NCBI GenBank assembly: GCA_043228905.1
Contig: JBHGNT010001024.1
Coordinates: 1-12,852 of the forward strand
Reading direction: 5' to 3'
DNA length: 12,852 nt
Origin: Azolla caroliniana
Lineage: Eukaryota > Plantae > Polypodiophyta
This document shows, one piece after another, positions 1 through 12,852 of this stretch (its first letter is position 1; each line of letters opens with the position of its first letter). The notes beneath the pieces were generated by a model. That model was not told the DNA's origin. It made no database searches and saw nothing but the letters and a program-made list of their open reading frames with translations. The translations under genes were made by a program, and so were the position numbers.

Positions 1-300
1 CTACTCTTTCCTACATGTATAAGTGATTGGGGTTATCTCCCCCGTAAACATAGATTACAAAATTAATCTAAATTTATATTACAAGTCAATCGGCATAAAG
101 CCGAGTTGGTAAGGGTAAAGTTGGTGTTTAGCCTAGTTTCGCTAGCCTCAAGGTTAGGTTGGTTCGATTCGGTCAAATTGACTTGTTCGAATCGTTTTTC
201 GTTCGAATTGGTCCGAATATCGAAGTCGGCTTGTGTCCGATTCTCGACTGCGGCCTTGTGTCGATTGTTCGTAGCTCGCTTGTGTCTGCTCCTATGCTCC

Positions 301-1044
301 TCATTGGATCCTCGATCTGTATCCGAGTTCGTTTGCCTCTCGATCGTTTCCTTTCCAGTCGGTATCCTCACTCAATGCTATTTCTTCAGGCCCTTGTGTT
401 TCCGAACGTGTCGATTTCGCTCTTCTTGTGAGTATGTTCAAGTTGGTTTTCGACTTCCCTTCTGCTCCTTGTTCAGCTTTCTTCTGCTCGGTCGCTTGTC
501 GTAGTCCCATCTTTGTCCTCAGTGTTCTGAAGCGTTGATCTGGGAGTGGTTTCATCAAGCAATCGGCGATGTTCACCTCGGTGTTGATCTTCCAGACTTC
601 GAGCTTCTTTTCGGTTATCAACTCCCGGATGTGATGATACCGCACCTCAATATGTTTTTTCTTTGCGTGATAAACAGGGTTGTTGATGAGGTGTATTGCG
701 CTCTATGAGTCGCAATAGATGGTCGGCACTGGTCAATCGATTCGGCTTGTAGCCGAAAAGTCGGCAGTTAGTCGATGCAGCCAGATCGCTTCCTTCGTTG
801 CCTCCGATGTTCTTATGTACTCGACCTTTGTGGTAGACAAGTTCATGCACTCTTGGATCTTTGATCTCCATGATGTAGCGTCGCCACCGTAGGTGAAGAT
901 CTAACCTGATGTCGACTTCCGATTATCCGAATTCCCAGCATAGTCGGAGTCGGTGTAGCCTTCGAATTCGATCGGGTTTGCCAATCCGAAAGTCAGTTGT
1001 GTATCTTTGGTTCCTTTTGGGTACTTGAAAATGTGTTTGACGGC
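301..1044 (-). pseudogene. pol: 3' end of Ty1/copia pol (RT-RNase H junction and RNase H), decayed; continuation of element C at 4648-8479
   Basis: Minus-strand translation gives AVKHIFKYPKGTK...EGYTDSDYAGNSDNRKSTSG*, IYCDS*SAIHLINNPVYHAKKKHIEVRYHHIRE and VNIADCLMKPL, which are typical copia RNase H motifs. In-frame stops at ~901 and ~703. Confidence 0.93.
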
Positions 1045-1165
1045 TGTTACCTTGTACGAGATGTACGGAGAGTCAAGTGTGATGATCGAGGGTCGAATGT
1101 TATCATGATGTTGTTGTGTATGTGTAGGAGGCATAAATGTAATTGTGAGTCTATACGTATGTGAA

Positions 1166-1191
1166 CACATGCACACACGTGTGTGCATGTG
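1166..1191. promoter_or_regulatory. Perfect 26-bp palindrome in LTR U3: G-box flanked by two RY motifs (copy at 4256-4281)
   Basis: CACATGCACACACGTGTGTGCATGTG equals its own reverse complement and contains CATGCA, CACGTG and TGCATG. Confidence 0.6.
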
Positions 1192-1274
1192 GATGGATAC
1201 GAGGAGGTGTGAGTGAGTGTCCAGTATGAATGCTCAATGGGGCTTACACCCTATGTATCTACCCCCTCTTGTAC

Positions 1275-1281
1275 TATTTAA
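1275..1281 (+). promoter_or_regulatory. TATA-like box of LTR A (copy at 4365-4371)
   Basis: CTATTTAA in mid-LTR, followed by a pyrimidine-rich leader-like tract. The same octamer occurs in LTR B. Confidence 0.6.
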
Positions 1282-1562
1282 CCCCTTATGGGGAATGAAT
1301 GAAACATGAATGAACATTTCTCTCTAATCTCTCTCTCTTTGACACCTTTTCTCTTCTCTCCCCCTCTCTCACGTTGAACCCCCTTGGGAGGGGGGTGGAG
1401 CCATTCTAGGCACCACCCCCCACCCCGCAATGCTTCTCTATATGATCTCTCTCCACCATCATACTCTTCATCATCTTTGCTATTTCACCATGTCTATCTT
1501 CGTCATCGTTAACCATCATCATCCTTAACCCTAACCCTAACTCTAAAACCTACAACACCTTT

Positions 1563-1573
1563 TGGCGACCACA
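1563..1573 (+). other. Primer-binding site of element A, probably tRNA-Arg(UCG)
   Basis: TGGCGACCACA lies 5 nt after the LTR end and is complementary to ...UGUGGUCG-CCA, the 3' end I recall for plant tRNA-Arg(UCG). Not database-checked. Confidence 0.75.
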
Positions 1574-3006
1574 ACGACGGACCCCCTTTGATGAAGAAGT
1601 CCAAGAAGAGAACGTGGCAGCATGATGTGCGAGAAATGACAGAAACATGCAAATGACGGCGACGATGTTCAATGTATGTGCAAGCGAAGAAATGGAAACG
1701 ATGACGTTTGTGTACGAGTGCAAGAAATGATGATGCGATGGAGGAATGCATGAATGGCAACAATGGTTGTGCGAGGTTGCGATTAGTGTCAATGTGCGGG
1801 TTTCCGATGCGGTTAGCGACAATGTGCGTGTTTTTGAAAGCGTGGTGCAAGATGCACGGCTGTACAAACTGCGATGCAGTGGGAACCGGTGCCAGCACGA
1901 CCGGAACGAAGAAGCCCACCAGGAGACTGCGGAGAAAGTCGCAGTGTGTGGTGCGAAGACCGGCAGGATGTGCTGAGAATGCACGAGAGGTGGTTCTAAA
2001 AGAAGCAACACAGAGAGAGTCGGAACCGGAATCGGAACCAGAACCGGAGCCGGTTAACACTGAAGGGTCGAAGAAGACCCAGACATTGACCAACAAAGAA
2101 ACCAACAACGCAGACCAGACATCTACGACCAAAGAAACCAACAACGCCAGAAAGAGACGATCGGATGCACCAGACAAAGACAGACAAAGACGACGAAAAG
2201 AGACTACTCAAACAGACAGAAAGAATGGAACAACGAAGGAGAAACACGACTAGAACAAATGCTAAGAACCAGTACAACAAAAACAGGACCACATGTGCCC
2301 TCTAGGTCATCGTCATCAACTGGGAAAGCAGAAAAAAAAAACAACTGCGACCGGAGCGGCAACCGACCAAAATGGCTAGATATGGGAGCAGCCGGACAAC
2401 ATTCAAACTGACTACCGGAAAACCGGCCGGAACAGACCAGAAGACGACGGACGGTGCCGGACTACGACAAACCAACAGAGGAACGAAGGCCGGATGGCCA
2501 CCGTATGGGAGCGGTTGAAGCACGGCGGAAGAGCGACCGGTATGGCGGCCAGAATGCGGGACAAATGGCCGAACGACGACGACGCTATACGGCAGAGGCC
2601 GGACAGCGGCGGCGAATGGCAACCCGAAACCCTACACAACAGTCAAAGAGTGGCCGAAGAGTAGCGGCCAGATTGTGTGCAGAGCGGGCAAGCGACGGAC
2701 GAGGTTGGACTATGACGAACCGGCAGAGACGACAACAGAAACGGAAACAGGGCTGGATGGAAAGGCGCCGGACAAGACCGAACAACTCGAGTGAAGGACG
2801 AATGGCGACAGAAACGACCGGAAAGCCAACGACCGAACGGAGAACGGTGATGAAGACGGAAGATGACGGGACGGTTGCAGAGATGGAGAGACAACCAGAG
2901 TGGTAACGGTCGGCACAGTGACAAAGCAATGACCAGAACGGACCGGACAACCGGACAAACGACAAAAACGACCGGAAAGACGAAGGGACGACCGAACATG
3001 CCAAAT

Positions 3007-3103
3007 GGACGAAGCGGCCGAACAACGATAGTTGGAGACAGGGACGACCGACCACAACAGTGAGGGAGACAGGGACGAAGCGGCCGAACAACGATAGTTG
3101 GAG
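3007..3103 (+). repeat. 31-bp direct repeat in the interior of A
   Basis: GGACGAAGCGGCCGAACAACGATAGTTGGAG at 3007-3037 and 3073-3103. Confidence 0.85.
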
Positions 3104-3720
3104 CAGTGCCCCGATTGCGGCCGAACAGTGGCGGCCAACAAACGAACATACAATCGACAATGATGAAAGAGAAGAAGAAGATGAAGAAGAGAAGAAGGAA
3201 GGGAAGGAAAAGAAGAAGCACAAGAGGTGTTGGCGGCCAGACAACCGATGGTCGTAAAGAATAGAGACAGCTGGACAGAGATGGCAGACCATAGAATGGC
3301 CGGACAGGGCCGACAGAGACGGCAATGACGCCAAACGATGGCAGAACAGGAACGGAAAGCGGCGGCTGGACAGCCACGTCCGAGCATCGGAGGACACTGA
3401 TGGCAACGGCGATGGACCCAGAGACGGAAACAGAAAAAAAAAAAAACAGAGACCGAGACGGAGATGAACAGAGAAGGCCGTACAAACACACAACGACACA
3501 CAAAAGCAGAGCGTGACAGCCACGGACAATGGACATAGAATAGCGGTGGTGAAAGAAGGAAGAAAAACGAGAAGAGAGGATGAAGATAAAAAGAAGAGAA
3601 AGATGAAACAGAATCAGAAAAGAAGAAGAAGAAACAGACAACGATAAGAGAGAGAAAACGCAGAAAACAAGAATAAGAAGAAACAAGAGAGGAAGAAGAA
3701 AAAGCAAGAAAGAAAACACA

Positions 3721-3842
3721 AAAAGAGAGGGGGGGGGCATGTAACAAATATTGAAACCCTGAGGGTACTGAATGAAATTGTCAAAATTCGAGGGTATGTA
3801 ATAAAAATTTTAAAACTTGAGGGCACCGACGAAATTGTAAAA
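3721..3842 (+). repeat. Degenerate ~29-bp repeat (4 units, alternating a-b-a-b)
   Basis: GAGGG cores at 3727, 3761, 3790 and 3819, each preceded by an A run. Units 1 and 3 continue YATGTAAYAAA; units 2 and 4 end GAAATTGT. Confidence 0.6.
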
Positions 3843-4091
3843 ACTCATCCACCTAGAGAAATGGATGTGATCAACAACGACAACTCACACAAAATTAAAG
3901 GAAGATACACATACACACAACATTTTTGGACCCATGACGAAGTTCGTAAGTCGACAGAACGAGAATGTTCGTGTCGCGGAAGATTTGCTGACCAACAAAG
4001 ATGGTCGAGTCAAGCACTCCGATCGAGGGAGTCAATCGTTGAAAGGACCGATGGAAGTTTTGGTCGAAGAAATATCATCATCAAGGCATGT

Positions 4092-4129
4092 GGGATCGAC
4101 GTGCAAGGCACTTTCCCACGGGCGTGCCA
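4092..4129 (+). other. tRNA-Arg 3'-end-like motif (PBS on the - strand) at the expected PPT position of element A
   Basis: GGGATCGACGTGCAAGGCACTTTCCCACGGGCGTGCCA ends 5 nt before the 3' LTR and is 34/38 identical to the reverse complement of 8901-8938. Confidence 0.8.
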
Positions 4130-4134
4130 TATTG

Positions 4135-4647
4135 TGTTACCTTGTATGAGATGTACGGAGAGTCAAGTGTGATGATCGAGGGTCGAATGTTATCATGATG
4201 TTGTTGTGTATGTGTAGGAGGCATAAATGTAATTGTGAGTCTATACGTATGTGAACACATGCACACACGTGTGTGCATGTGGATGGATACGAGGAGGTGT
4301 GAGTGAGTGTCCAGTATGAATGCTCAATGGGGCTTACACCCTATGTATCTACCCCCTCTTGTACTATTTAACCCCTTATGGGGAATGAATGAAACATGAA
4401 TGAACATTTCTCTCTAATCTCTCTCTCTTTGACACCTTTTCTCTTCTCTCCCCCTCTCTCACGTTGAACCCCCTTGGGAGGGGGGTGGAGCCATTCTAGG
4501 CACCACCCCCCACCCCGCAATGCTTCTCTATATGATCTCTCTCCACCATCATACTCTTCATCATCTTTGCTATTTCACCATGTCTATCTTCGTCATCGTT
4601 AACCATCATCATCGTTAACCCTAACCCTAACTCTAAAACCTACAACA
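4135..4647 (+). repeat. 3' LTR of element A
   Basis: Matches 1045-1557 except C1057/T4147 and C1524/G4614 (by-eye comparison). Confidence 0.95.
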
Positions 4648-4781
4648 ATAAATAACGAAAGCTTCATTTGAGATCGAACTATGTCTACGCTTCAATCATA
4701 TCTTCTGTCATACTCTTTGTGTTGTTTGTTGTGCACATTCACCAACAGGTCCTCACTTGCTTCTGTGCATTCATTCCATCA
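4648..4781 (+). repeat. 3' remnant (134 bp) of the copia 5' LTR
   Basis: Ends ...TTCCATCA, 2 nt before the PBS. The left end abuts the LTR of A. Confidence 0.75.
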
Positions 4782-4783
4782 AT

Positions 4784-4795
4784 TGGTATCAGAGC
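4784..4795 (+). other. Primer-binding site, initiator tRNA-Met
   Basis: TGGTATCAGAGC, the canonical plant iMet PBS. Confidence 0.95.
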
Positions 4796-5732
4796 GACCT
4801 GCTGTTCAACAGAAACAAAAGCAACAGAGGAAGCTAAAAAAGAAGACAAGGTCAGAAAAATAAATCTCACTTTCAAAAAAGAATATGGCTTCAACATCCG
4901 GAACGACAATTGAAATCAGAAAGTTCAATGGCAAAAAAATTTCCTTGTGGAAGGAGATGATGCAGGATGTGCTGATCATCAGAAAAAAAAACCCATTTCG
5001 ATGAAAGTCGAAGAGTGGAGATCCATAGACGAAATCGCGCACTCCACCATCCGAATGCACCTGGCCGAAAATGTCTACTTCAGCATGGTTAAGGAGACAA
5101 CAACTTTCTCGTTATGGGAGAAGTTGCAAGTAGTGTACAAAAAGAAGTCCTCCTTGTCAAAACTCATATTGATTCGACATCTATTCAATATAAAGATGAG
5201 AGAGTTAGATCTTGCTACCTCCCACATCAACAGCTTCAACCGGGTGTTGTCTGAACTCTCCTCCCAAGGGATTAACTTTGAAGAAGAAGCTAAAGCCCTT
5301 GCCCTCCTATCGAGCTTGCCAACGAGTTGGGAGGTATTCTGCACGACATTTGCCAATAGCCGTCCGATCCTAAATCTAGATGAGACGATCGGCCAAGTCC
5401 TCATTGAGGATATTCGGCGAAAATCGATGGGACTCACCATTGATGGATCGGCAGAAGCCCACCACTCGGCAGAGTCAATAAAAGAAAAAACCGATAGAAC
5501 CAGTTGACACCATAGTCAATCGAAAACAAGGGGAGACCGACAACGGTTGAAGTTGAGACCGGGCCGATTAGGCGAAAAATGCACCGATTGTAGAAAAATC
5601 GGTCACAATGTTTTCGACTGCTAGTTGATCAAGAGGAAAAAGAGTGGCCGACAATTTGAGCGGAATTGAGGACGATCCGACTCGAACCACTCTCCAATCA
5701 ACAACCAAGTCAATGTTGTTGACACTCGTTCT

Positions 5733-5811
5733 GGAGAAATCCTCTCCTTGGAGGACTTGATGATCGGAGAAATCCTCTCCTTAGAGGACTCGATGATCGG
5801 AGAAGTCCTCT
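5733..5811 (+). repeat. 33-bp tandem duplication (2.4 copies) between zinc knuckle and protease
   Basis: GGAGAAATCCTCTCCTTRGAGGACTYGATGATC at 5733 and 5766, partial copy at 5799. Confidence 0.85.
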
Positions 5812-8474
5812 ACAGTGCGCAAGACGTGCACACATGTTTGCTAGATTCTGACGCCACATTTCATGTAACCCCAAACATCAAATGGTTTTCGAACTATTCA
5901 CCCGAACCCAGCGGCACAATCTGACCCGACAACGGGCAAGAGTGCCTAATCATAGGGATCAGAGAGGTCCCCATCTGACTGCCGAATGACAACATGATAA
6001 CCCTGCACCAAGTTCGGCACGTACCCGATCTGAAGAGGAGTTTGGTCTTCATCGGCATGTTAGCCGAAGACGGGTACTGAACGACTCTCAATGCATTGGC
6101 ATGGATGATCTGCCATGGAAACCTAAAAATAAGAAGCGGACAAAAGTACAACAACTTGTATCCAATGATGGTGATCAATCCAGAAGGGGCCGTGAACGTA
6201 GTCGACAAGACCGACCCGAACCTATGGCATGTGATGGTGGTCGGCTATATTCCAAAATTCCAAGCAAAGATGGACTTCTGCAAGCACTTTCAATACAGGA
6301 AACTGACCTAAAGTCAGCAATCCCTTCATTATGAGACGATATGTCAGCCCCTAGAGCTCGTGCACGTAGATATATGTGGGTTGATGCCCGAAAGATCTTT
6401 AAGTGGCTCCCGGGACTTCATCACATTCGTTGATGATTGTACACAAAAGGTCTGGGCCTATTTGATTTGGTCAAAAGACGAAGTGGTCGAGACCTTCGCT
6501 CGAGGGTTAATTGAAGCGGGGAACTGGTCGGGACATAGAGTGAAGACACTCCGTTCTGACAATGGAGACGAATATACCTCCCGATCCTTCAAATAGTACC
6601 TGTCTGACAAAGGGATCCGAAACCAAAAGACCGTTCCACACACACCCATTCATAATGGAGTGGCAGTACGGATCAACCAAACGATCCCAAGGAGGATGAC
6701 AACAATGCCCCAACAAGTCGGATTGAAGCCAAAGTTCTAGGCTGAAGCATTGCAAACGACAGTATATTTGATAAATCTATCACCGTCGAAAGCAATCAGG
6801 CTCGAAGTGCCACAAGCATTATGGTCAAGCAAACAAACAACCTATGAAAGGCTTTGAATTTTCATATGCGAAGCTTACACATTTATCCATAGGGAGAAAA
6901 GGACCAAGTTGGTACCCCATGCAACAAAATGCATATTTCTCAGTTATGGAACTGGAGAATCAGAAATTGATCCGAAACGGTAACGTAGTCTTCAATGAAG
7001 ATTCTATCCTCTCTGAGCGGAACTAGCAGAAAGTAGTGGGCAAAAAGCTCTCTTTCAAAATCGACAGAGAAATTGTAGAAAGACCTACCCACCGGGCTGG
7101 ATCGAAGATTTGACAAATAGTCGAACTCGAAGAAAAAGCCATCAAAGACAAAGCCAAATCGACAAGAGTCGAAAAAGACAAAGTTGACAAGGTGTGAATC
7201 GAAAATGACTCAACTAAGCCTCTCAATCCTGAAGTAGGGGAGGTTGCGGTAAAATCACCGAAATCCTATCACAGGGGCAAGTCATCCGAAACGACTCCTT
7301 ACATAAATGGCTCAACAAATGCCGATTGCCCGACATAGACGATTGAAAGATCCGAACAGATCATTACAACAGTCAAGAGATTTGGACGAAATCGAAGGCG
7401 GACAGAGTTCTATCAACCGGGCCTCGACTACGTCAACTACACCGATGCAGACGAACCAAGCACATATGAAGAAGCTATAGCCGCATCAAACGCTGATACA
7501 TGGCTACAAACCATGCAATCCGAGATGGATTCGATTCAACATAATCAAACATGGGAGTTGGTCGAACTACCAGCTGGAAGAAAGTCGTTGTCCTACAATG
7601 GGTCTTCCGATACAAATATGTATTCGACTCAGAAAAGCCCAAATACAAAGCTCAGCTCATCGTGAAGGGATTCAAACAAAAACATGGGATCGACTACGAC
7701 GAGATATTCTCACCAGTAGTCATGATGACCACCCTTCGGCTCCTACTCAGGGTCGTGGCAACCGAAGACCTAGAGCTTGAGCAATTGGATGTCAAGACGA
7801 CTTTCCTACACAGAGACCTAGAAGAGGACATTTACATGTCCCAACCGGTAGTCTTCACGGTGACGGGGGAGGAAGGTCACCTCGTATGTCGATTGAAGAA
7901 AAGCCTTTACGGCTGAAAACAAGCACCGAGGATGTGGTACCAGAAGTTTGACTCCTACATCCAATTACTCGGTTACAACTGGTCCAACTCCGACCCATGT
8001 TTATATACTCGGCAACAGGCTGATGAGTCCTGGATTAATCTGATCCTATATGTCGACGACATGCTGATTGTAGGGAGCAATCAACCCGAAATCGGAAAGC
8101 TAAAGCGGAGCCTTCACGACAAGTTCGCGATGAAGGAACTCGGACAAGCCCAACACATACTGGGCATGAGGATCGAGCGAAATCAGAAGACGAAGACTCT
8201 CCGACTCTCCTAGTCTGACTACATCGGAAAGATGTTGAGGCACTTCAACATGGAGCACGCGAAGTCAACACCAACACCGCTTTCGTCGTCGATTTGACTA
8301 TCAGACAAAGACTCTCCTTCGATGGACAAGGAGAGAGAGCTCAATGGAAAGATACCTTACGCATCAACAGTAGGAAGTATCATGTGCCCGATGGTGGCGA
8401 CCAGACCCGATCTTGCATATGTTGAAGGGGTCGTTATTCGGTACATGTCGAATCCAGGACGGAAGCATTGGGAG

Positions 8475-8479
8475 GCCGT
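8475..8479 (+). other. Target-site duplication GCCGT; second copy is ACGGC at 1040-1044 (GCCGT on -)
   Basis: Joining 8479(+) to 1039(-) with one GCCGT copy restores CAT TGG GAG GCC GTC AAA CAC ATT TTC AAG TAC = HWEAVKHIFKY in frame. Confidence 0.9.
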
Positions 8480-8898
8480 TGTTATTCGCTAGCCGGACAA
8501 GGCCTAACACAAGGTGTCACGGAGACACTTCACCAAAGGGTGATTACGGCATAGAATTAAGATTCAACGATTACAACGACTTACGTAGGTTACACGATTA
8601 GATTGCTTTGGTTAATTACACGCGTAAGATACAGCAGTAAGTACAGAACGGAAATCAAGACAGAAGTACAAACATCATAAGCTCTATTAATTATCCGCTG
8701 CGATTACAATGGGGTCCGGGCCTTTAAATAGGTTTCCGGCCCGTAGTACAAAACGGTGCCTATCGCACCTATTCGGGATCCGTCCGGATCTGGAACGGCA
8801 TACCGTTTCCAGTCCGTCCGTCCACACTATGCTCATTTACAACCATATTTAATTAATTCCTTCACTCCGTATTTTGGACTCCTTGCCGGCCGGTAACA
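8480..8898 (-). repeat. 3' LTR of element B (419 bp)
   Basis: On - it reads TGTTACCGG...GCGAATAACA (TGTTA/TAACA terminal inverted repeat). TATTTAA on - at 8724-8730. It interrupts the copia RT exactly at 8479/8480. The partner LTR is not in the window. Confidence 0.85.
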
Positions 8899-8900
8899 CA

Positions 8901-8938
8901 TGGCACGCCCGTGGGACAGTACCTTGTACGTCGAACCC
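8901..8938 (-). other. tRNA-Arg 3'-end-like motif (antisense PBS) at the expected PPT position of element B
   Basis: Element sense reads GGGTTCGACGTACAAGGTACTGTCCCACGGGCGTGCCA-TG-LTR. On + it reads as a PBS, TGGCACGCCCGTGGGAC. Confidence 0.8.
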
Positions 8939-8950
8939 TTCTTGGCCCCT

Positions 8951-11886
8951 TCATTGTTTACCCAAATTGTCCAAATTACTTTGTTCCAGAATTTCCACTT
9001 GTTCTTCCGGTTGTGGTTGCTGCGGCTGTGCTTGCTGCTGCTGCTGTGGTTGCGGTCGGGACTGAGGCTGCTCCGGCTGCTCTGCTTGCTGCTGCTGCTC
9101 CGTTTGTTTCTCTGACTCCGGCTGCTCCGTTTGTCTCTCTGACTCCGGCATCTCCGTTTGACTGCTTCCGGTCCGGTCTCCTTCCAGTAACGGTTCCTCA
9201 TCACTAAGGTTGACCGTAACCGGTTCCCGTGATTTCTCTTCCCGGATCCGGGACCTCTCATAGCTTTCAAACTGGATCTGCGCCTCCAGCCTATCGTCGT
9301 CCAGCTGAGCTACAAGTTGCCGGACTTGCTCTAGTTGGTCCTCCGCCAAGGCTTGAAAGTCTTCGGCCAGCTCATCTCTTATGCCGGTGAAGTCTTCGGA
9401 ATTCAGCATATAGCAATCATCTCCCTCCTTCCGCCGGTTCTCAACGTCGGCCCGGAGCAATTGGAGTTCCGCCGCGTTCGTGGCCCACTTGGTCCACCAT
9501 TTGACGGACCCGTTGTCAATCAAGCTCTTGGTCTGGTTCAACCAGGCCCGCATGATATCCTGGATGCGACTTGCTCCCATTTGTGCTCTGCTTTCCACCA
9601 CTTGTCGCTCCTCCTTCAACTGCTTGATGAGATTTGCCGTATCCTCCGCCTACTCTCTGTAGCACGTCAGCTGCCCTTGATATGTCGTTTGCAGCCTCTG
9701 CAGTACCTCCGCCGCTCTTTCTTTTTCCGCCTGCTGTTGCCTGAGGAGCTCTGTCCGAACCTTCTCCGCCTCTTCCAACCGTCTTCTGGTTTCCGCTTGT
9801 TCCTTGGCGAATGCGATTGCGGTCTGATCAACTGCTTGCCGGAGCTCATCCGTCCGTTGTGCTCCGTTTGCAACCGTTTATACTCTCGGTGCAATTGCTC
9901 AAATTCCTCTGTTTTTTGTTTGAGCTTGCCGTTGATCTGGCGATGGTTCCGGTCTTCCCGGTCCTTTACCTGCCGGAGTTCCTCTTTCAGGCGCTCTACT
10001 TCTGTTTCGGCGTTCCTTCGGAGCCTGTCCTTCTCTTGCAGCATTTTCTCCTTCTCCTCCTTGAGCCGGTCGTACGCTTGGTGGCCTTTCCGTAAGCTCT
10101 CCTCGGCCCGGCGTAGGTTCTCAGCAGTCTTTTTGAGTTCTGCCTCCGCTGCCGTCTTCAATTCTCTTTCGCGGCTCCTCAGCGCTTCTTGGGCAGCTAG
10201 CTCATCCTTTAAATCCGCAAGCTCTTGGGCTTGTGCCGCATTTCTCTCCGGAACGGTTTCCGTTGCCAGGGTCTGATTGCTATGTACAGGTTGATCTGCC
10301 GCTTTATTCTGTACATTGCCCGGAGTCACCGGTGCTTGGACTTGTGTTGTCAAAGCCAATTGAGCCATTTCCCTTGTGACCTTGTCCAAGTCTTGTTCAA
10401 GGCTCCGGATTCTGGACCGGGCCGTCTCTAGATCTACGGTTGTGACGAGCAACCGTTCGTTGTGCGCTCTCTCCTCCGCCTCTATGTACTCGACCGCTCC
10501 GGCGATCTGCTCGCCTACCCACCGTAGCCACATGCTACTGGTGCCTTGCTGCTGTACTGGTCCTACTCCTTGGCCGCCGTGTGTGCTGGCTGGGCTCGCC
10601 GGCTGTTGAGTTCCGGTTCTCGCCGTCTCTGGAGCCGTTGGAATGACTTCTTCTATAGAAGCCGTCGAGGCCGGTTCCATACGCACCGGTTCTGGTTCCT
10701 CCCTTGTGGTTTGCTCAGGTTGAGTTGGGGGCGTTTCTTCCTCTTGCGGGCACGAACGCTCCCCCGCTGTCCCGGCGGTCCTACTTCTTGACCGTCGTTG
10801 GAGGTGCTCTTCTGGCTCCTCCGTTTCCTCTTCCTGGGTAACGGCCTGTTTCTGTGCCGTCAAGGGTTCCGGTTCCTTCTGTCCCGGTCGCCGTATGGTT
10901 ATCTTAACGGGTCGGACCGGTGACACCTCCTCCAGTTCTGAGAGCCGTTTCTTCCCTTTCGTCACCTTCGACGCCAGCAGCTGCTGTCGTTTGGACGCCG
11001 GCTTCGAGGTGCTTCCTTCCGATACTCTTGGCCGCTTCTTTGGCTGGACGGTCTCGACCGGCGGCACGAGCAATGTTATCCACTGAGCTACGGCGTGCCA
11101 CAGCTTCCGGCCCTCCTTGCCGTCCTTTCCTCGTACCATGTCGATTGCCGTGCACAAACCGTCTGCAATCAACACCGGCCAGTCCACCTTGATCCCTTCA
11201 TAGGTGGCTATGATCATCCCTGCCCGATTTTTTGGCATGACAGGGGGTCGGGGGTACACGTGGCCGTACTCATGGAGCACTCGAGCTATCTCCCTGAATA
11301 GCGGATCTTCGCCGCCCTGCGTCCGATAGCCTTTGCCGGCAACAGAGTACTCACCGAAATATCGGATGAGTTGCTCCGAGGTTGGGTTATCGATCTGGAA
11401 GATACCTCCCTCCGGAAGGCCTGTTAGCGCACGGATCGCTTCCTCGGTGATGACCTCTGTGGCGAGCTCCTTGATGACTCGGTCGGCTTCTCTGTGCGGC
11501 GGTGCCTCCATGATGGCCAAGAACCCCTCCAGTCTGTGTTGCCTGAACCATTTCCTGGCCGCTTCCGACAGCGTTTGTGGTTCCATGTCTGCCTCGAGGT
11601 CGAGGGAAGATGGCGAGGTAGAGTGGTGATGAGAGTGAGAGCGAGAGAGAGAGCGTTCCGGACGTGGGGGTTCTCTGCGTGCAGGTTCGCGTTTGCTCAG
11701 CTTCCACTGCCTTGGTGCTTTTGTGCTTCTTGGCTCGCGAAATGAAAAGGTCTCCATGCGTTCTGCTTCTTCTTTGTGCGTTTTGGCGCCTTTTTCGAGC
11801 ATGCACACGTCGTGTACCAATTTAGTATTAAGTAGCGTGGCGGCTCTTAAATGCCCACTTCGTACCTTTTCGCTCCTTGCTTTCAC
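8951..11886 (-). pseudogene. Extra 3' ORF of element B (~950-980 codons when repaired): plant-transposon-protein-like domain, disordered linker, long coiled coil, Q/P/E-rich tail
   Basis: ORFs 9667-11886 and 8951-9619 join through one frameshift near 9860 (other frame reads QRTDELRQAVDQTAIAFAKEQAETRRRLEE...) and one TAG at 9650-9652. Motifs ITEEAIRALTGLPEGG and GIKVDWPVLI. Confidence 0.75.
9098..9160. repeat. 27-bp tandem repeat (2.3 copies) next to CAG-rich low-complexity sequence in the ORF tail
   Basis: CTCCGTTTGTYTCTCTGACTCCGGC at 9098 and 9125, partial at 9152; encodes PESE(R/K)QTEQ. Confidence 0.8.
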
Positions 11887-11972
11887 GTCCGTTCACACCT
11901 CGATTTTTAATGATTTCTTTCTTTTTCTTTTTCTTTTTTTATTTTTTTTTATTTAAATGACGGTATGTGACC

Positions 11973-12852
11973 TTACACATCCGTAGGTCCCTTCGGACCC
12001 TTACCGTTTTCCTTACGGGTTGCCGTGTCTTCTTTCACCTCTGCTACGGGTTCCCCGTTGTCTTTTTCTTCCATCCGTACCGTTCCCGGTATAGTGCCGG
12101 TGATCTGCATAAACGGGTTCTTTGGCATCGGTCCTTTATAGGGCTTTAGTCTAAATCCGTTCATCCACTTGCCTAGTACTTCACCGGCAAGTGTCCCTAT
12201 CTAATAGGACCCGTTGTATTCCCGTGTCAGCCAATACGGGCCTGTCCATCTGAACCGGAGTTTACCCGGCATCTTGCCCATCCTTGTTTGGAATACTAGA
12301 ACCGGTTTTCCGATTTCGAACATCTTTTCGTTACCTTTCCGGTGACGGTCAACGAACGCTTTCCGTCGTCGTTGCTCCAGTTCCATGTGTAGGATGCTGG
12401 CCAGCCGTTGCTCCTCCAGTTCGCATAGTGCTGCTAGCCGCATTTCTTCCGACTTCTTTTCATTCAGCCGTTCCCGTAGTTGGATCCGTAAGCTTGGTAC
12501 CTGAAATTCCACCGGCATGACCGCTTCTAAGCCGAATGCTAACCGGAACGGCGTTGTCCGGATACTTGTTTTGTATGCCGTTCGGTACGCCCATAGCGCG
12601 CTATGGAGCTTTGTATCCCAGTCCGTCCGGTTTTCATTGACGATTTTGCGGAGAATGTTCTGCAGCGTTTTGTTGGTGGACTCTGCTAACCCGTTCGCTT
12701 GTGGGTAGTACGGTGTGCTCCGTTTATGGACCATGGCATAGAACGTTGTTAAGCTTTCCACTACCTGGCCGAGGAAGTGCCCTCCTTGGTCGCTGATTAA
12801 TTCAATCGGACATCCATATCGGCACCAAATGTTCTCGTACAGGAATTTTGCT
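11973..12852 (-). pseudogene. pol: Gypsy pol C-terminus: integrase core and GPY/F module, one premature stop
   Basis: RYGCPIELISDQGGHF...STPYYPQANGLAESTNK...LWAYRTAYKTSIRTTPFRLAFG...KLRFRWTGPY...SY*IGTLAGEVLGKWMNGFRLKPY. The TAG at 12201-12203 is in frame with ORF 11973-12164. Confidence 0.92.

Follow-up and report, generated by a model that had tools for sequence, protein, structure and literature searches.

Two long terminal repeat (LTR) retrotransposons, here called A and B, lie in a 12,852-nt stretch of Azolla caroliniana DNA (contig JBHGNT010001024.1, positions 1 to 12,852; hereafter the window), the whole of which is a nest of plant retrotransposons. Just inside their 3' LTRs, in the position of the polypurine tract, both carry a block of about 40 nt that is conserved and, by its sequence, copies the last ~30 nt of tRNA-Arg(UCU), CCA included. 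Priming from an RNase H-resistant polypurine tract counts as a universal trait of retroviruses and LTR retrotransposons, one on which annotation tools depend. The presence of the block in this position suggests, without proving it, a previously undescribed tRNA-based priming of the plus strand. We found no description of a tRNA-end block in place of a polypurine tract in the open-access literature, an absence that is not proof, and the motif is likewise absent from the supplements of Neumann et al. 2019 (PMC6317226).

The tRNA-end block and its copies

In element B, the block of ~40 nt occupies 8901-8938, 2 nt inside the LTR at 8480-8898. Read on the plus strand of the window, this LTR (TGTTA...TAACA) is followed by CA and then by TGGCACGCCCGTGGGAC at 8901-8917; on the minus strand, the coding strand of B, the letters are GTCCCACGGGCGTGCCA-TG-TGTTACC, a tRNA 3' end with CCA followed by the spacer and the LTR. 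In that direction the block corresponds to tRNA-Arg(UCU) nt ~49-58, a 13-nt mini-hairpin and nt 59-76. Element A carries the same proximal sequence at 4113-4129, 5 nt ahead of its 3' LTR. There are two occurrences of the 15-mer core in the window, at 4115-4129 (+) and 8901-8915 (-), where chance would give 0.01, and two matches were reached in none of 200 shuffles. The inverted repeat that A and B form spans 39 nt at 90% identity (4092-4130 versus 8900-8938); the count of 34 of 38 nt given for the motif in A by the initial annotation was essentially right. The LTR termini in the window are TGTTACC...ACAACA and TGTTACC...AATAACA; apart from the LTR tip TGTTACC, the core of the minus-strand primer-binding site (PBS; this first site is called PBS1 below) and the 3' block, A and B have nothing in common.

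The tRNA with which we compared the block comes from a related element and not from host tRNA genes. ARAGORN found a complete tRNA-Arg(tct) with encoded CCA at 1190-1265 of contig L011, a mini-element of the L081 family, where it sits at the 5' PBS position, ~460 nt from the 3' block. In element sense it is a PBS1 complementary to the whole tRNA, and this full copy probably arose by read-through of a tRNA primer. The ends of this mini-element are complementary to each other over ~17-28 nt. The 3' end of its tRNA reads GTGGGTTCGA-GTCCCACCGGGCGTG-CCA, which the block matches at 17 of 18 proximal positions and at 8-13 distal ones, the distal match extending to 12-14 nt in L026, L107 and L122. Two differences stand out: a 13-nt insertion after position 58, and the loss of one C from the CC at the junction of T stem and acceptor stem. 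The initial annotation had likened the block to a tRNA 3' end with CCA, probably that of tRNA-Arg(UCU), which agrees with the match to this retro-copy; a mismatch to the tRNA, one of the refutations it foresaw, did not turn up in this comparison. The block had also been read as one base short; the shortfall is real, but the missing base is a C in the tRNA sense (G in the PBS sense), not an A.

We gathered 15 copies of the block, belonging to at least seven LTR families, from the window and from plant DNA in metagenome contigs, using homologues of the 739-aa open reading frame (ORF) of B, a scan of the metagenome contigs with the 15-mer, and homologues of gag. The 739-aa ORF has six homologues, all on transposable element (TE) contigs. 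Most of the 120 matches of the scan were chance bacterial ones, and eight plant TE contigs showed the extended block adjoining a TGT... LTR start. The gag homologues yielded two further contigs, L126 and L133, independently of the pattern search. Most of the copies lie on short metagenome contigs, where the assembler has probably collapsed the 5' and 3' LTRs; both LTR sides are still visible.

The copies have a common layout of integrase, extra ORF, block, short spacer and LTR, and coding sequence, wherever present, runs in the direction of the tRNA-sense block. In B, L001, L004, L005, L133, L081 and L126, integrase and extra ORF stand upstream of the block, which is in the sense strand. In L001, 95% identical to B, the order is integrase, extra ORF, block, TG, LTR and then unrelated flank. 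L004 (83% identical to B) and L005 (69%) follow the same order, and past the LTR end (...TAACA) they continue with CAGTTT-TGGCGACCACGA, a leader and a Retrotrans_gag ORF, all on the strand of the extra ORF; L133 shows the layout of L005 again. In L081 an integrase (rve, H2C2) precedes a 1170-aa ORF; the block, GG and the LTR with its TATATAAA box come next, and past the LTR stands CAATT-TGGCACGCCCGGT, a sense PBS for tRNA-Arg(UCU). The block of L126 is diverged (GTGGATTCGA, hairpin GGGC/GCCC, GTCCCACGAGCGTGCCA), with the end of the extra ORF upstream and, downstream, TG, LTR, CTTT-TGGCACGCCTGG, gag and pol, all on one strand. The TATA boxes (TATATAAA) of L005, L081 and L126 agree in direction with the genes, and the LTR of B has a TATA-like CTATTTAAAGG in sense orientation (minus strand).

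These copies bear on a simpler explanation of the locus, namely that 8480-8898 and the motif are the 5' LTR and PBS of a separate plus-strand element, nested or rearranged. On the plus strand the LTR, CA and TGGCAC... do look exactly like a standard 5' LTR and PBS, and the locus is rearranged, its copia segment (4648-8479) being inverted. Such an annotation artefact is nevertheless barely credible, given the same ORF-block-LTR contiguity in L001 and the five other contigs just named, the sense PBS1 and gag in coding orientation on contigs that run past the LTR, and the agreement of TATA boxes with genes. A nested plus-strand element, which the initial annotation had itself named as a possible refutation, is ruled out by the order ORF-block-LTR-PBS1-gag in independent copies. 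The assignment of 8480-8898 as the 3' LTR of B, made in that annotation, is upheld; B is a minus-strand gypsy element, with its integrase and its 739-aa and 222-aa ORFs all on the minus strand.

The insertion in the block forms a mini-hairpin whose stem exists in five versions: GTAC/GTAC, GTGC/GCAC, GTGT/ACAC, GGAC/GTCC and, in L126, GGGC/GCCC. On alignment A1, both partners vary in three of its four pairs, pairing is intact in 100% of cells, and the covariation score was reached in none of 500 shuffles. The T-stem-like pairing in the block shows no covariation, and its outer pairs are unpaired in 4-6 of 13 copies. ARAGORN found no tRNA in the window and Rfam no match there; the block holds only the 3' third of a tRNA, without an acceptor-stem partner. 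Judged from these alignments, the block is not a folded tRNA mimic, because its T-stem-like pairing does not covary and is often incomplete.

Block and surroundings differ in their conservation. Between B and L005 the block is identical at 38 of 39 positions and the flanks at 69%, and the proximal box is identical or one base different in every copy found without the pattern search. Between CCA and U3, 14 copies have a spacer of TG or GG, and A has TATTG. The stretch turned up in 24 runs, none of them recorded as RNA. Four of these, analysed as Logan contigs, show a depth peak over 8800-8999 and low-agreement divergence exactly at 4089 and 8938, the inner edges of the two blocks, and the block is very abundant in host reads. 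The block alone is a module common to many families. Two internal changes were seen in the proximal box (L004 and L126), both G to A on the sense strand; they are compatible with tRNA wobble pairing and equally with methylation-driven decay. In older copies (L131 1208-1250, L132 232-275, L130 717-740), CG and CNG sites have decayed by C-to-T and G-to-A changes, such as TGGTGACCATGA for TGGCGACCACGA and CCAGCCAG for CCGGCCGG. Methylated plant repeats are expected to decay in this way, which restricts the conclusions on selection at the block that substitution spectra allow.

Could the block be an inert relic of an old tRNA read-through or recombination event? The whole tRNA copy in the mini-element L011 indicates that reverse transcription does insert tRNA sequence, and the one-base deletion in all copies suggests a single origin. 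A relic without function is highly improbable all the same, since the block hardly varies between families that can no longer be aligned in their LTRs and interiors, its hairpin shows compensatory changes, no alternative primer site adjoins U3, and some of the elements are young (the two LTRs of A are 99.6% identical).

The U3 boundary and the plus-strand primer

The 5' LTR of A starts at 1045 with TGTTACC and without a block, and copia coding sequence reaches 1044. As a test of the insertion site, 8479 was joined to the reverse complement of 1039 with one 5-bp copy dropped; the rejoined copia RNase H frame is continuous (...GRKHWEAVKHIFKY...). The true 5' LTRs in L130 and L131 have unrelated sequence ahead of them, start with TGTTAACC or TGTTGGCC, carry no block, and are followed by PBS1 and then gag. 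Since 5' LTRs have no block upstream, U3 starts directly past the block, and the plus-strand primer must therefore end at the CCA or within 2-5 nt of it. An LTR extending upstream over the block, with a purine tract ahead of it, was considered and rejected, as the 5' LTRs of A, L130 and L131 start at TGTT and have no block.

No polypurine tract adjoins the 3' LTR in any of the copies (15/15), the bases there being ...GGGCGTGCCA and the spacer of 2-5 nt. The longest purine run next to U3 is 3 nt, in B as across all 15 copies, which bears out the description of the sequence inside the LTR of B as not purine-rich; a normal polypurine tract in most copies, foreseen as another possible refutation, did not materialize. 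A purine-rich stretch ~30 nt upstream is confined to the B subfamily and is not conserved.

The separate, normal PBS that the initial annotation had suggested looking for past the 5' LTR is present in related copies. Contigs that run past the LTR show a spacer of 4-6 nt, a sense PBS1 (TGGCGACCACGA or TGGCACGCCCGGT) and gag on the same strand. PBS1 is TGGCGACCAC(GA) in A, L004, L005, L128, L130 and L133, TGGCACGCCCGGT in L081 and L129, and TGGCACGCCTGG in L126; the sites of L081, L129 and L126 are complementary to tRNA-Arg(UCU). The 12-mer of the A/B type is also the primer site of ERV9, which has been labelled both tRNA-Arg and tRNA-Trp (PMC4724089). The plan of PBS1 comprises 10-13 nt complementary to the tRNA 3' end, a hairpin, and CGAAC, the complement of T-loop GTTCG. 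Its hairpins are CTGC...GCAG in L004 and L005, GCTGTGA..TCACAGC in L081 and CTGTG..CACAG in L126; PBS1 of A (1563-1580) has none. That PBS1 and the block follow a common plan is the best indirect argument for the block as a putative tRNA docking site.

We tentatively propose, at somewhat less than an even chance, that this lineage and its non-autonomous parasites use two tRNA primers, one for the minus strand on genomic RNA and tRNA-Arg(UCU) for the plus strand, and dispense with the polypurine tract. On genomic RNA the block has the tRNA sense and could not bind the tRNA, whereas its complement on minus-strand DNA could. After minus-strand synthesis and RNase H digestion, this complement would become a second PBS (PBS2), to which host tRNA-Arg(UCU) would anneal by its T-arm and the 17 nt at its 3' end, leaving the mini-hairpin looped out. 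From the CCA end of the tRNA, reverse transcriptase would then synthesize through the spacer into U3-R-U5, yielding plus-strand strong-stop DNA and fixing the U3 boundary where a polypurine tract normally would. Integrase would trim the 2-5 extra nt, no more than the 5-6 already trimmed on the PBS1 side. Covariation of the mini-hairpin is expected if the hairpin must fold out of the way. In a cofold of the minus-strand site with the last 30 nt of the tRNA, 26-30 nt were paired, the hairpin was looped out and one C was bulged. In PBS1 of the L081 family the match to the tRNA shows no deletion, but PBS2 retains it, which fits an inherited site, not one recopied from the primer in each cycle.

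Several points weigh against priming by a second tRNA. The cofold is an illustration built from the model and not a test of it; the tRNA compared is a retro-copy inside a related element, not a host tRNA gene; and the missing base would impose a bulge on the tRNA-DNA duplex. The tRNA-DNA junction of the plus strand is a prediction, and most copies come from short metagenome contigs, with LTRs probably collapsed in assembly. In A and B, moreover, PBS1 targets a different tRNA and nothing on the genomic RNA would recruit tRNA-Arg(UCU), so that its selective packaging would have to be mediated by protein.

Some of these difficulties would vanish if the primer were encoded by the element itself. 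Block RNA left by RNase H on minus-strand DNA and cut at or near the CCA, perhaps by the same specificity that removes the tRNA primer, would prime the plus strand with no host tRNA involved. The positional evidence is the same (CCA 2-5 nt ahead of U3, no purine tract), A and B, with a PBS1 directed at another tRNA, would not need to package a second one, and the one-base deletion would do no harm, the pairing between the RNA and its own cDNA being perfect in every case. We consider a self-encoded primer unlikely, however: in a continuous RNA-DNA duplex, covariation of the mini-hairpin and the lasting likeness of the distal T-arm box to a tRNA would both go unexplained. From what is established on polypurine-tract selection, no RNase H is known that spares a sequence of this kind.

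The block might instead act at the RNA level, as a T-arm mimic for packaging, dimerisation, 5'-3' cyclisation with PBS1 or small-RNA protection, while the plus strand is primed by an unrecognised non-purine RNase H product adjoining the block. Covariation of the mini-hairpin would suit such a signal, and in L081, L126 and L011 the block and the PBS1 of the same element, each based on tRNA-Arg(UCU), are complementary, so that the ends could pair. In A and B, however, the block is fully conserved although pairing with PBS1 (TGGCGACCAC) is impossible, and cyclisation with PBS1 is thus ruled out there as its conserved function. The T-stem part, with its frequently unpaired outer positions, does not covary, and what varies least is the 3' end with CCA, which is single-stranded and stands at a fixed 2-5 nt from U3; this geometry is one of priming, not of folding. 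For these reasons an RNA-level signal appears distinctly unlikely to us.

Element classification and window layout

Sequence comparison shows that B, A and several sister families belong to the Ty3/gypsy-type LTR retrotransposons or are non-autonomous derivatives of them. They have direct LTRs with TG...CA ends, a 5-bp target-site duplication (the outer end of B's LTR, 8480, adjoins the copy GCCGT) and a tRNA-complementary PBS directly past the 5' LTR. The gene order gag, reverse transcriptase (RT), RNase H, integrase is found across relatives, the window holding only the integrase end: L002 carries RVT_1, RT_RNaseH, Integrase_H2C2 and rve, L004 has Retrotrans_gag past LTR and PBS1, and in L126 gag is followed by pol. 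The ORFs of L001 and L002 that are homologous to the integrase of B carry rve, Integrase_H2C2, RT_RNaseH and RVT_1. The polypurine tract usual in Ty3/gypsy elements is the feature that block-bearing elements lack.

A close likeness is to the Ogre/Tat/Athila group, in which tRNA-Arg is a common primer (Neumann et al. 2019, PMC6317226). As in that group, there are TG...CA LTRs, a 5-bp duplication, gag followed by RT-RNaseH-integrase and a 5' PBS; a large extra ORF 3' of integrase and, in L081, L129 and L126, a tRNA-Arg PBS recall the group and its Tat clade (PMC6317226). In place of a polypurine tract, unlike those elements, ours have the tRNA-sense block. Pfam detected no second, archaeal-type RNase H in the 826-aa partial pol of L002, which is incomplete, and we therefore do not file the elements under Tat.

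Extended or bipartite primer sites are well known from the 5'-3' bipartite PBS of Ty3, the boxes of Ty1 and the tRNA T-arm contacts of RSV and HIV-1. The predicted recognition of a primer at PBS1 and PBS2 by tRNA T-arm plus 3' end is of this kind; in those systems, however, the tRNA sits on genomic RNA and starts the minus strand, whereas PBS2 would bind only on minus-strand DNA and start the plus strand. A polypurine-tract primer is an RNase H-resistant piece of the genome defined by its purine content. The block resembles it in adjoining U3, in defining the left LTR end and in the similar small overhang left for integrase, and differs in not being purine-rich and in that the proposed primer is a tRNA or a tRNA-end mimic. 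In the Mauriceville retroplasmid and in plant-virus tRNA-like structures, tRNA-like 3' ends direct reverse transcriptase or replicase. There too a CCA-ended tRNA-like sequence is a landmark for initiation, but it stands at an RNA 3' terminus and serves the first strand, while the block is internal and has no acceptor-stem partner.

The extra ORF of B, split into 739 and 222 aa in the window, is a single frame of 972-974 aa in L001 (1041-3962). Its protein is rich in E, K, R and Q, with predicted coiled-coil character. Pfam returned no family for the extra ORFs of the window and its relatives; an Atlas search gave a weak lead to Streptophyta clusters, one of them with Transposase_28. The interior of A (1558-4134) is strongly purine-rich on the plus strand, with an AT skew of up to 0.68, and has GA-rich low-complexity repeats and no recognisable gene. 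Having just the LTR tip, the PBS1 core and the 3' block in common with B, A shows the profile of a non-autonomous element dependent on B-type proteins. Each LTR of A contains a perfect 26-nt palindrome, CACATGCACACACGTGTGTGCATGTG, at 1166-1191 and 4256-4281. Positions of all features are collected in Table 1.

Table 1. Features of the window, with PBS1 sites of related contigs in the last row (positions there refer to the contigs).
Feature	Position	Strand	Remarks
copia RNase H tail	1-1044	-	Pfam/ORF reading of the window
Element A, non-autonomous	1045-4647	+	two LTRs, 2.6-kb purine-rich non-coding interior
5' LTR of A	1045-1557	+	513 nt, 2 mismatches to partner LTR
PBS1 of A, sense, TGGCGACCAC	1563-1572	+	5 nt past 5' LTR
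Block of A: GTGGGATCGA, hairpin GTGC/GCAC, TTCCCACGGGCGTGCCA	4090-4129	+	repeat comparison and alignment
Spacer TATTG	4130-4134	+	5 nt
3' LTR of A	4135-4647	+	pairs with 1045-1557
copia 5' part (same copia element as 1-1044)	4648-8479	+	gag and RVT_2
Element B	8480 to window end	-	LTR, 222-aa ORF, 739-aa ORF, integrase end
3' LTR of B	8480-8898	-	minus strand TGTTACC...GAATAACA; same LTR after block in L001, L004
Spacer TG (minus strand), CCA to first U3 base	8899-8900	-	2 nt
Proximal box, = tRNA-Arg(UCU) nt 59-76 including CCA, one C missing	8901-8917	-	tRNA copy in L011
13-nt insertion with 4-bp mini-hairpin GTAC/GTAC, tRNA 58/59 boundary	8918-8930	-	alignment A1
Distal box GGGTTCGA, = T-stem 5' strand and T-loop, tRNA nt ~51-58	8931-8938	-	tRNA copy in L011
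Extra ORF of B, distal part, 222 aa	8951-9619	-	no Pfam family
Extra ORF of B, 739 aa, downstream of integrase	9667-11886	-	no Pfam family
Integrase of B, C-terminal part	12201-12761	-	weak rve_3 match
Tripartite PBS1 sites	L004 2320-2355; L005 3861-3897; L081 5517-5555; L126 1551-1590; L129 ~55-100		

The copia segment at 4648-8479 is inverted relative to its continuation at 1-1044. Its tRNA-iMet PBS (TGGTATCAGAGC) lies at 4785-4796, only ~135 nt from the LTR end of A, which means that its 5' LTR is very short or else cut off at 4648. One and the same 5-bp target duplication (ACGGC, or GCCGT on the other strand) is present at 1040-1044 and 8475-8479, bordering the U3 start of A on one side and the U5 end of B on the other. 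Duplication and inversion together look like one concerted integration that used the ends of two different elements, for example of two co-packaged cDNAs, with the copia inversion later or coupled. Such an event would predict the reverse complement of 4648-4652 next to the 5' LTR of B, beyond the window.

Implications for the priming of LTR retrotransposons

From the sequences at hand, this lineage appears to have replaced the polypurine tract by a tRNA-end site and to have stayed mobile, the latter because the LTRs of A are so nearly identical and the block is so abundant in host reads. If the proposed priming is true, it could explain why LTR finders built around a polypurine tract would report none in such elements. 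The second primer of LTR elements would then be evolutionarily interchangeable, and these elements would offer a natural system for the use of a tRNA by reverse transcriptase on a DNA template. Fragments from the 3' ends of tRNAs are known to target primer-binding sites, and the question would then arise whether they may interfere at the plus-strand site too.

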